In this document: positions 52,997 to 56,675 of the stretch, piece by piece
Numbering within the stretch: the first letter of the stretch is position 1
Layout of the letters: every line of letters begins with the position of its first letter
NCBI RefSeq assembly: GCF_000143415.4
Contig: NW_003314331.1
Span: forward strand, 62,001-126,000
Length of the DNA: 64,000 nt
Direction: 5' to 3'
DNA from: Selaginella moellendorffii
Lineage: Eukaryota; Plantae; Lycopodiophyta
The notes under the pieces: model-generated
Told to the model about the DNA's origin: nothing
The model's database searches: none
Seen by the model: only the letters and a program-made list of their open reading frames with translations
Translations under genes and position numbers: made by a program

Positions 52997-53335
52997 ATGA
53001 GGAGCACCAGAGTCCTGGCTTTGATCCTTGTGATGGGTTTGTACTGCTCGAGCTTCATCCAAGTGGCTGTTTCGGGAAGATTGGTTGTCGCAGAGAAGCA
53101 GCAGGAGAGCAACGATCATGGAAAGCACCGGGCTGGTGATCATCCAGCAGCAGCGGTGGAATGGATTCACAAATCTCCTAGCAGCAGCCATGTCTTGCAT
53201 TCGTCCAATGGAAGAGTGTTTAGCCTCTCGCTCAACAGGATGCCAAAGAAGGTGACTCCACCGTCGGGGCCGTCCAAATGCCACAACGCGATTTCCACGG
53301 CTCGGGCTTCCACCATGGCAAATTGCAGGAACTAA
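52997..53335 (+). CDS. Small secreted prepropeptide, IDA/CTNIP-like (112 aa)
   Basis: Signal peptide MRSTRVLALILVMGLYCSSFIQVAVSG; C-terminal MPKKVTPPSGPSKCHN…NCRN; candidate TATA at ~52504. Confidence 0.8.
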   Translation: MRSTRVLALILVMGLYCSSFIQVAVSGRLVVAEKQQESNDHGKHRAGDHPAAAVEWIHKSPSSSHVLHSSNGRVFSLSLNRMPKKVTPPSGPSKCHNAISTARASTMANCRN

Positions 53336-53676
53336 CACCAGTGGATTCCACTCATTTTTCATTTCTTTTTCTTGGGTGGGGAGCTTAGATCAACGTTTTA
53401 AGATAGTCCATTCTTTTCGGCGATTTGGAGGCCAGTGTAGAGAAAAGGCTAGACACAGACACTCACACTTGTTTTCTTGTCTATAAGAAAGTTTTGTTCT
53501 CATGAAAACTTGTATAGAAAACGATCCAAAGCGCTTTGGAGCCAACATGTTTTGACACAAGATTTGGAATCGACAAACCAGCGGCAATTTCTGCTTAGTT
53601 GTAACCCAACATCAAATCAATCAAACATCACCAAGAAAAATCTAAACAAAAGAATGAGTGAGTGACCCTCTGATTT

Positions 53677-53950
53677 GTCAAAAAATGGCGGCTCTGAGAA
53701 TATTGCGTCAATCATGAGACCGGATTGTCAATGGTCAAAGACCACGTGTCACCGACGTGGCCGAGTAGAAACGCTAGAGAACTCGTAAAAGTCAACCAGC
53801 CGAGAACGGAAGTGTGTGTCGATGGATTTCGAAGATCTCCACGCGACTATCAAGATCAAGCGGCCTGATCTCCAGACAGTCGAGTTTTCGATTATCCACA
53901 AAGCACTGCGCGGAGATTCCAGCCCGTGGTTCGCATCTCTATATAACACA
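53677..53950 (+). promoter_or_regulatory. W-box/G-box-rich promoter and TATA of the second peptide gene
   Basis: Five GTCAA (reverse TTGAC) cores in 53677-53795, CACGTG at 53743, TATATAA at ~53940. Confidence 0.55.
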
Positions 53951-54096
53951 TGGGCTGCCTGTTTCCTCCCAGCGAAGTTTCTGGCTGGCTAGCGAGATAT
54001 TCACCGCCATCATCAGGTTTGGAAAGTTCGGGCCGCAGCTTGAATCGTATAAATCCATGCTTCCACCCCGTGCTTTTGATTTCCAAGCCGAGGATC

Positions 54097-54366
54097 ATGT
54101 ACATGGCTTGTAGAAGAGCTGCAGGTGTTTTCGTGATCCTGGCGGCGATGGTTTTCCTGGATTGTTGCGGGGCATCGAGGCTTTTGATCGCTGGTGCTGG
54201 TGTTGGAGAGTTGTCACAAGGATCATCAAGAGTCTCAAGCCCATCTTTGCATCTGGAGCAACACACGCTCCCAAAGAGAATACCAGTTCCTCCATCGGGT
54301 CCTTCTAGATGCCACAACAGTCTCTCGGCGCGATTCAAAGTTAAGCGTCCAGGGCCATGCCAGTGA
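54097..54366 (+). CDS. Small secreted prepropeptide, IDA/CTNIP-like (89 aa)
   Basis: Signal peptide …GVFVILAAMVFLDCCGASR; C-terminal LPKRIPVPPSGPSRCHN…GPCQ (IDA EPIP: LPKGVPIPPSAPSKRHN). Confidence 0.85.
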   Translation: MYMACRRAAGVFVILAAMVFLDCCGASRLLIAGAGVGELSQGSSRVSSPSLHLEQHTLPKRIPVPPSGPSRCHNSLSARFKVKRPGPCQ

Positions 54367-56336
54367 CGATCTCCAGTCTCTCACAAACTCTCACAAAAGA
54401 AAGCCATTCTTTCCATATTTTTAAATGTTAATATCAATTATAATTGTACTAAAGCATATACTTATGAATTATAAACACAACAAAGCTATAGTTGTCCTTT
54501 TTACTGTGAGATATATTTGATTAAGCCCATAGTGGCGTATTAACTGTAATATGCCTGGTAGATGAGCGACAAGGCCATCTTTTCTAGCATTGTTATGCTC
54601 GCAAACCCCTTGGTTGGATGTCTCCAAAGTTTATAATTGCGTCGGGATCGCGAAACTCTCGCCCGGATAGGATCCACCCCTTCGTGCTTTTGATCTTCTC
54701 TCGACAGCCCAATGAAGTCTCGCATCGAGCACAAGCGATGCATGATCCACCGCTGTTCTTCTTTCTTTCTAACGAGAAGATTTTGTCTCGTCTCGGGGCC
54801 TGGGACATGGACGCTGCGAGCCTGGTACCATAATGATTTTAAGAAGCACATTAGTCCAAGCAAAGCTTCCCGACCTGGTCGTGACTGGCAGCAGCAATCC
54901 AGTGTGCCTGCCATTTAAGTCTGCGGTGTATAGAATAAGTGTACGTGCTGGCTGGATCTGTCCCGGCGCTGCACTCCAGAGTGAGTCATCACAATGTATG
55001 TAATCTAGCATTTTTTTCCTAGAGATAAGAACTTACATCCACTTGGAAGAGCTTCGCACGCAAAGCATATAACGCGAGGAGACACTCCAATGCCATCTGT
55101 GACCGTGTTGGAGTTGAACACTTCAAAAGGTTGTGTTGGAAAAACCATCGAAATGCTACAGCAACATGACGGAAGGCTGGCGTTAAAACACAAACGAAAC
55201 GACCAACAGACCGGCAGTAAAGCAAGGCGAAAAACCATAGAAAAGAGAAAACGAAAAGGGAGGAGATCAAAAGTCTAAAAGCAAGTGAAAAAAAAAAGGA
55301 AAAAAGAAGAGGAAGCGGTACCCGTTTGGACAATGCCGGCTCCCGTACCGCACCAGTCGGTGATGTCCCACGCGCAGCGATCGATCTCAACTAAAAACAG
55401 TGAATCAACTCATTACCAGGCAATACTAAGCAGCCTAGAAACGAAAGACTTACCAGTTTCCGTGATGTGATGGAACATAAAACACCGACTGTCGTCGTCC
55501 ACTGTTGAATCCTAGCAGTCATAAAAGAATAAGTAGCAAAAGTCGGCTCGGCTTGGCTCTAAGAAAATTAAATCTGAAAAAAAAAGAAAAGAAAAAAGAG
55601 ATGAAGAACCAAGACGAGTGGAAGGGTCATATAACTCTGAACGAAGCTTCACAAAAATGCACTTTTTTGTGAGATTGAACGAAGCTCTACAGTAGGATCC
55701 CCTCGCTTTTGCTGGACGCACAGATACTATCCCTTGTGAAGTGGGCCGGGGAGGAGCTCCTTTCTTACAAAATCCCGTGTCCGATGATCCTGTGTCCAAA
55801 CTCTCCTCGTTAGACAAATAAGCTTTCGAGTAAAAGGATAACTCACCTACTTCTCGCACCATACTTTACACTCCGTTTTCCCTCTCTTTCGGCTGAACAG
55901 CTTAATTTGGTCGCGTCTGAGTCGAGCAAGCGAAAGGGAAACCTGTGAGGCCGCGACTTGTGTTGATAGAAATCCACACATCTCCCCCCATCTCCATCAC
56001 AGCTTTCTTTTCTCTTTGCTTGTTGCTTTCCTTCGCTCACTCGCAATCCCACCTCATCTTCCAGCCAGCGAGAGAGAGCCTCTGTCTGTCTCGGAAGTAC
56101 TCGCAGCTAGCTACGCTTTCCTTCTTTGATTGATTGAGAGCTCTTCTCCGCGAGTGCGTGCTTGTTCACCGAAGTAAAGGTTCCCTCTTCCGTCTTGTGC
56201 AGCTTCCAAGCTTTCATGCAATTATTTGCCACCGGCGCCACCACTTCTCGCTAGTCCCTGCTTCATTCTTTCTCGTTGCGTGTCGAGGCTACTCTGAAGA
56301 TATTCTTGCTGCCCGGCATATGATCGTATCACCACC

Positions 56337-56675
56337 ATGGAAGCAGCTACCGACAGAAAGAAGATGACGATCGTCGTGTTGAATTTCATCCTGCTGGGAC
56401 TTCTCGCCGAGAATGCTTTGTGTGCCAGGTATGGAGTAGCAGGAATTCCAGCGGCTTCTCCCTCTGCCTCTGCTCTTTCCCATGTTCCGTCTAAGGTCCA
56501 GTCTCAATTCTTCACAGTTCCCGCAAAGAAAGAGGCCGATCCAGCATTGCTTTCCGAGCAGAGAATGATCCACAATATGCTTCCCCGAGTTCTCACCACT
56601 CCACCTTCTGGTCCCAGCAGAGGAGGAAACGATATCGGTCTACAGTCCACCACGGCCCAGGATAGTGCACCTTAA
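56337..56675 (+). CDS. Small secreted prepropeptide, IDA/PIP-like (112 aa)
   Basis: Strong context ACCATGG; signal peptide IVVLNFILLGLLAENALCAR; core MLPRVLTTPPSGPSRGGN. Confidence 0.75.
   Translation: MEAATDRKKMTIVVLNFILLGLLAENALCARYGVAGIPAASPSASALSHVPSKVQSQFFTVPAKKEADPALLSEQRMIHNMLPRVLTTPPSGPSRGGNDIGLQSTTAQDSAP

Follow-up and report, generated by a model that had tools for sequence, protein, structure and literature searches.

Three linked genes in Selaginella moellendorffii predicted to encode IDA/IDL-family peptide precursors

RESULTS

Three small reading frames with a common core

We have analyzed a stretch of 64,000 nucleotides (nt) of genomic DNA, termed the window and numbered from its first letter, that contains three small open reading frames (ORFs) resembling the precursors of IDA-type signaling peptides. 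The host is the lycophyte Selaginella moellendorffii; a neighboring U-box protein is encoded on scaffold GL377635.1 (assembly GCA_000143415.2), which is identical to the window over 21,197 bases. The ORFs lie on the + strand within 3.7 kb. Gene 1 (52997–53335) encodes 112 amino acids (aa), gene 2 (54097–54366) encodes 89 aa, or 87 aa if translation starts at 54103, and gene 3 (56337–56675) encodes 112 aa. Each is read as a single exon. The sequence PPSGPS is found three times in the six reading frames of the 64 kb window, and not once in 100 dinucleotide-block shuffles.

All three ORFs begin with a hydrophobic stretch (11-residue hydropathy 2.7–3.3) that ends in a small-x-small site followed by Arg, i.e. 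VSG/R, GAS/R and LCA/R in genes 1, 2 and 3 respectively. Signal peptides are predicted on the basis of hydropathy and this cleavage-site pattern; that of gene 1 has 27 aa (52997–53077). The 12-residue core lies 18–19 residues from the end of each precursor. In gene 1 it is VTPPSGPSKCHN (53252–53287), with Cys95 at position 10, and a second cysteine, Cys110 (53324–53326), lies beyond an interval of 14 residues. The core of gene 2 is PVPPSGPSRCHN (54283–54318), directly preceded by LPKRI, with Cys72 at position 10 and 15 residues between it and the second cysteine, Cys88 (54358–54360). Gene 3 has the core TTPPSGPSRGGN (56595–56630), with no His at position 11 and no Cys anywhere past the signal peptide, followed by the tail DIGLQS (56631–56648), a flank typical of angiosperm IDL2-5.

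The only DNA similarity among the three genes is a 31-nt match between the cores of genes 1 and 2, and the prodomains are unrelated. The duplications must therefore be old. An earlier note on this DNA, made from the letters alone, had described three same-strand ORFs of 89–112 aa, each with a signal peptide, a non-conserved prodomain and a conserved PPSGPS core, and had supposed a lycophyte host; the positions, cores and host all agree with what we find, and the signal peptides are predicted in each case. That description included neither the second cysteine found in genes 1 and 2 nor the tail DIGLQS of gene 3.

Assignment to the IDA/IDL family

We compared the ORFs with a profile built from 111 angiosperm IDA-LIKE precursors only. 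Genes 2, 3 and 1 matched with expectation values (E) of 4e-10, 6e-10 and 6e-6 respectively, and these were the only strong matches among 2,148 translated pieces of the window, the next piece scoring 0.46. Since the alignment used to retrieve the angiosperm precursors contained the three ORFs, the set leans towards them. Nearly all of its members carry PF27884, and many are named IDA-LIKE. The ESM Atlas gave clusters of the IDL5 family, or plant clusters without a name, as top matches for genes 1 and 2, recognition of gene 1 falling just under the reliable level.

The precursors share with the IDA/IDL family (Pfam PF27884 IDL5; ligands of HAE, HSL1 and HSL2) the leader and its following Arg, which are predicted in all three, a variable prodomain, an upstream (L/M)P(K/R) motif, the P-S-G-P-S core, Asn at position 12 and a short tail. 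Their lengths (89, 112 and 112 aa) compare with the approximately 70–110 aa of the family, with the core near the C-terminus, and the S(G/A/V)PS core with upstream LP(K/R) is found in all three. The gene 2 12-mer is identical to that of IDA at eight of 12 positions. The strict Arabidopsis ending (R/K)(R/K)HN is absent; it is replaced by KCHN in gene 1, RCHN in gene 2 and RGGN in gene 3. Position 10 is thus Cys or Gly, as against Arg, Lys or Gln in IDA/IDL peptides, gene 3 lacks the His11 kept in the family, and genes 1 and 2 end with a second Cys. The tails of 14–15 residues are slightly longer than the 13 given for Arabidopsis.

It weighs against the assignment that the His missing from gene 3 is conserved in 117 of 119 IDL cores, and that profile searches with the three genes, subject to length and word limits, found no orthologue from another Selaginella species. 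These searches returned only two Selaginella gene 1 models, angiosperm IDL sequences, Pro-rich multi-module precursors and one repetitive false match. A single-protein search with gene 2 gave no match at E ≤ 10, look-ups of the three ORFs returned no exact entry, Pfam assigned them no significant family, and PDB sequence searches gave just one chance match to a capsid.

The earlier note had ascribed to the locus an architecture common to IDA/IDL, PIP/PIPL and CTNIP/SCREW ligands, and had drawn attention to the eight identities of gene 2 with IDA and to the LPK upstream. The identities, the LPK (as LPKRI) and the layout of an HSL-clade ligand stand, but the grouping was too broad, as the peptides sort to IDA/IDL only. 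PIP/PIPL peptides, which are ligands of RLK7, have the SGPS core in common with these genes, and SGPSRGG in gene 3 resembles PIPL3. Membership of that family was nevertheless rejected, as the terminal GxGH is absent and all three genes have a tail after the core. The sequence comparisons place the predicted products of genes 1–3 among precursors of the IDA/IDL family and not of CTNIP or PIP, and they would be IDA-like variants rather than canonical PIPR, PIPK or PIPQ peptides.

Genes 1 and 2 resemble a two-cysteine sub-type of seed plants

Zhang et al. (2020; PMC7552357) described the motif PVPPSGPSPCHN as that of ‘PVPP-type’ IDA-like candidates, which are reported from seed plants only and were identified in silico only. 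Relative to this motif, gene 2 is identical at 11 of 12 positions and gene 1 at nine, and both thus have a 12-mer close to that of the sub-type. Gene 3 agrees at seven positions and has no Cys, so is not a PVPP-type member. Genes 1 and 2 share with the PVPP-type the Cys10-His-Asn core and a single downstream Cys, and one Picea member agrees with gene 2 both in the 15-residue spacer and in ending with Pro-Cys. They differ at position 9, which is Arg or Lys in place of the Pro or Gln of the PVPP-type sequences. The accessible text of PMC7552357 contains no discussion of the second Cys. Section 10 of that text places MA_9094901g0010 in Marchantia, whereas its own table says Picea abies; the paper therefore contains no bryophyte record of the PVPP-type.

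Plant contigs retrieved from metagenomes with a degenerate DNA pattern of the Cys-10 core encode a precursor of 80 aa that has both Cys-His-Asn and a terminal Cys-Pro and clusters with a Vigna angularis protein. Two of the five pattern matches (L004 and L008) were rejected as chance occurrences in GC-rich, gene-dense DNA. Amborella has 19 residues between the cysteines, two Picea sequences have 15 and 6, and cashew has 12, as counted by eye from the supplement of PMC7552357; in Vigna there are 22. Of the eight Cys-10 precursors seen, seven have a single additional Cys downstream (genes 1 and 2, Vigna, Amborella, two from Picea, and cashew), compared with a Cys in just one of 119 ordinary IDL tails. 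The downstream Cys as a mark of the sub-type is an observation of the present analysis rather than a published one. By these comparisons genes 1 and 2 appear to belong to a two-Cys sub-type common to conifers and flowering plants. The literature searched contained no functional study of it in any plant.

Since both cysteines are present in seven of the eight cases, which range from lycophyte to eudicot, we favor, with modest confidence, a mature form of the products of genes 1 and 2 that would retain the tail and be closed by a disulfide bond between Cys10 and the terminal Cys. Several points weigh against such a loop. Metagenome contig L006 has a Cys-10 core with no downstream Cys. The spacer varies from 6 to 22 residues and its sequence is not conserved. 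Moreover, the published description of HAE/HSL pockets is of a tapering shape suited to linear peptides, so that a looped ligand would need a different pocket. The one receptor known to accommodate a loop is HSL3, which is reported for angiosperms.

The variable spacer would also fit a reading of genes 1 and 2 as encoding ordinary linear IDA peptides in which Cys is just another variant of position 10, like Arg, Lys or Gln. We consider this the smaller, but still considerable, possibility. The terminal Cys would then at most tether the tail during secretion before being cut off. The His-Asn is kept exactly at the point where IDA ends and is followed by x-hydrophobic like the tails of IDL precursors, and published HSL2 models use SmIDA peptides ending in His-Asn. 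Set against this, a linear peptide leaves the frequent company of the second Cys (seven of eight cases) unexplained over the same range of plants, and trimming at Asn would be expected to give a peptide with an unpaired thiol in the apoplast, or one still cross-linked to its tail.

In contig L006 (5576–5842, − strand) the Cys-10 IDA-like core precedes a CLE-like 12-mer that is in frame with it and lies at the stop codon. There is no in-frame ATG before the hydrophobic stretch, so that the start is either spliced or lost to a contig error.

Gene 3 carries an IDL2-5-type tail behind an aberrant core

The tail of gene 3 has the commonest residue of the angiosperm IDL set at all six positions of DIGLQS (4e-8 by composition), and is thus the modal angiosperm tail. 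DIGLQS is found exactly in 22 of 104 angiosperm IDL precursors, Aquilegia and Nelumbo among them. On a tail profile of the IDL2-5 (G) type it scores 18.3 bits, compared with −2.9 for the IDA/IDL1 type. The DIG flank has no match in the tails of genes 1 and 2. DIG has been described as the flank of IDL2-5, where it is taken as a protease site, and this PIPK type was traced to early eudicots (PMC6681299), although it may be older within the angiosperms (PMC4627355). Gene 3 thus has the DIG flank after its core and also shares the precursor end S-x-P with IDL2-5, but in place of the Lys10-His11-Asn12 of the PIPK type it has Gly-Gly-Asn, so that its core ends RGGN and not RKHN. If the likeness is due to descent, it suggests that the IDL2-5 flank is much older than the early eudicots.

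The RGGN ending leaves room for a different account, in which gene 3 encodes a decayed or PIP/CEP-like peptide and DIGLQS arose by convergence or chance. With the tail removed only 14 bits remain, GGN-ended motifs occur also in spruce and Diphasiastrum genes of uncertain family, and the comparison set for DIGLQS was retrieved with a profile that included gene 3. Yet chance is hard to reconcile with six modal residues in six, or with a flank that was described independently for IDL2-5. A decaying gene is at odds with its lack of any polymorphism (below), and a PIP peptide would have the terminal GxGH. We therefore regard this account as improbable, and retain gene 3 as an IDA-like precursor with an IDL2-5-type flank.

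The Diphasiastrum complanatum sequence KAJ7538441.1 (L003, 10001–12505) is a secreted precursor of 834 aa with approximately 17 IDA/CLE-like modules. Most are PPxGPNPxHN following LPxG, and one is GGN-ended like gene 3.

Relation to CTNIP/SCREW peptides

Three features of CTNIP/SCREW peptides (ligands of HSL3/NUT) recur in genes 1 and 2, namely an IDA-like N-terminal core, the register of the first Cys and the presence of another Cys close to the end. The first Cys of these genes lies two residues past the SGP(S/N) core, which is the CTNIP register, and two monocot entries of a relaxed CTNIP set have spacings of 13–15 residues. Genes 1 and 2 could on that basis be lycophyte orthologues perceived by an HSL3-like receptor, but we judge this very unlikely and have rejected orthology. 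The CTNIP motif is absent, the cysteine being followed by His-Asn (CHNAI and CHNSL) in place of T-N-I-P with its conserved Pro62, and the spacings of 14 and 15 lie outside the 9–11 of the family filter. CTNIP and HSL3 are reported from angiosperms only, and the split of HAE from HSL3 is dated to approximately 363 million years ago. The lycophyte split is older than this. The separate Cys-His-Asn sub-type of seed plants, with 11 of 12 identities, provides a better fit.

Evidence that the reading frames are genes

A second haplotype of the locus is present on GL377595.1 (L002), with the same gene order. All three frames are intact there, with no insertion or deletion. Single-nucleotide polymorphisms (SNPs) between the haplotypes number seven in gene 1, one (silent) in gene 2 and none in gene 3, and the four replacements in gene 1 all lie within its first 45 residues. 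Genes 2 and 3 together have one SNP where 8.7 are expected at the flanking rate (P = 0.002); for gene 3 alone the comparison is none in 339 nt with approximately 4.9 (P = 0.008). Gene 1 by itself gives no depletion (seven observed, 4.9 expected), which counts against the reading as genes.

Twenty runs from 12 studies contain 22–50% of the sequence words of 52700–56900, and none contains all of them. Three short transcripts would be expected to provide a share of between 0.21 (coding sequence only) and 0.42 (with approximately 150 nt either side). The word shares point, but only indirectly, to transcription of genes 1–3; a caution is that nearly all the runs are guessed to be RNA, with 7–57 million letters of contigs in each. 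Taking these data together, we consider it likely that the ORFs are real single-exon genes for secreted prepropeptides of the IDA/IDL family. That at least one is an unexpressed chance frame or pseudogene, as the lack of gene models for genes 2 and 3 and the indirect transcript support might allow, is most improbable in view of three independent matches to leader plus core within 3.7 kb, the indel-free frames in both haplotypes, the SNP depletion in genes 2 and 3 and the expected share in RNA-like runs.

DISCUSSION

Possible maturation and role

The frames and alleles are intact, the leaders are hydrophobic and the sequences match at the level of the family. The further steps are projected by analogy from the processing and perception described for Arabidopsis IDA (PMC5824936, PMC6681299). 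The precursors would be secreted with removal of the leader before Arg, cut by a subtilase directly after the (L/M)P(K/R) motif, possibly hydroxylated on the central Pro and released at the C-terminus at Asn. Perception would be by an HSL-clade leucine-rich-repeat kinase with a SERK co-receptor; S. moellendorffii has three HSL-clade receptors. For gene 3 the most likely product would be a linear 12–14-mer ending in Asn, released at the IDL2-5-type DIG flank. Genes 1 and 2 would give the disulfide-looped form that we cautiously prefer, or failing that a trimmed linear peptide ending in His-Asn. By analogy, and with weak support, the role might be in local cell-wall loosening or stress signaling rather than floral abscission.

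Earlier work and evolutionary implications

No IDA was found in lycophytes by Vie et al. (2015). Furumizu et al. (2021; PMC8462819) reported three putative peptides, SmIDA1-3, found by tBLASTn outside the annotation and modeled on SmHSL2, together with MpIDA1-2 in Marchantia. SmIDA1-3 are said to retain His-Asn, in agreement with genes 1 and 2 and unlike gene 3; they may or may not be the same as genes 1–3. Our three core sequences are absent from the papers and supplements searched, where gapped alignments could hide them. IDA-like genes of S. moellendorffii and Marchantia are already published (PMC8462819), as is the Cys-10 motif in seed plants (PMC7552357). The present analysis adds two points: genes 1 and 2 are connected with a putative two-Cys sub-type represented across vascular plants, and a lycophyte gene carries the IDL2-5 flank.

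Two different sub-types, both old, seem to be represented among the three genes. Judging by the tails, two sub-types of seed plants may already have been present in early vascular plants. The suggestion in the earlier note of a candidate ancestral locus is not supported by these two sub-types, nor by gene order, for which no conservation was found in other species. A broader proposal is that genes 1 and 2 represent an old orphan class of disulfide-looped IDA-type peptides extending from lycophytes to eudicots, from which CTNIP/SCREW might have arisen by shortening of the loop, and that the IDL2-5 flank of gene 3 is as old as the vascular plants. We put this forward as speculative, and think it rather unlikely to hold in full. 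If it were true, the sub-types of IDA-family ligands would have separated before the radiation of the HSL receptors. The layout of the two-Cys sub-type is that expected of an intermediate between linear IDA and cyclic CTNIP, and a recent paper still calls the two non-homologous. If inherited, DIGLQS would date the IDL2-5 flank to the lycophyte split rather than to early eudicots, and would point to conserved processing at the C-terminus; a 2017 paper still gave the enzyme responsible for C-terminal trimming of IDA as unidentified. IDA-type peptides outside seed plants are known as predictions only. The locus supplies three exact and mostly unannotated candidates to set against only three HSL-clade receptors.

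Annotation, upstream elements and neighboring genes

The earlier note expected genes of this kind to be missed easily by gene finders, and this is the case. Genes 2 and 3 have no called gene in the window haplotype. Gene 1 lies inside SELMODRAFT_424795 (window 52739–53335), a mis-started model of 168 aa with 56 extra residues ahead of the leader. In the other haplotype its model SELMODRAFT_416410 (L002 10001–10602) contains a predicted intron that splices the core away. Both public models of gene 1 are thus probably wrong. The odd C-terminus of SELMODRAFT_416410 raised the possibility of a broken allele, which was rejected; it results from the predicted intron, and the DNA is intact.

TATA-like boxes, identified as consensus matches only, lie 160 nt before the ATG of gene 1 (52837–52842, + strand) and 157 nt before that of gene 2 (53940–53946, + strand). 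Because of these boxes the longer in-frame starts at 52712 or 52739 for gene 1 and 53950 for gene 2 are unlikely, and were rejected; the ATG at 53950 is probably too close to its TATA-like box to be included in the transcript. A scan for bacterial promoters, unsuited to a plant, gave chance-level results. Upstream of gene 2 there are two W-box matches and several CGCG-type boxes (53733–53795), again by consensus only, and an out-of-frame ATG at 54057 lies 40 nt ahead of its start.

The genes upstream (40636–51832) comprise a PPR gene, a malectin-like receptor kinase (42845–48653, − strand), a copper transporter (49027–49482, − strand), a small secreted Cys-rich protein with a stress-antifungal domain (49738–50166, + strand) and a U-box/ARM ligase (50636–51832, − strand). 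These are of signaling type, with no tie to the peptides seen. Two genes follow downstream on the − strand (57467–61772), one DCP5/LSM14-like and the other an importin-alpha-like gene with ARM repeats. In the other haplotype the DCP5/LSM14 model (L002 11544–16415, − strand) has 853 aa and covers gene 3 on the opposite strand; with 504 aa in the window haplotype, the longer model is probably over-extended.

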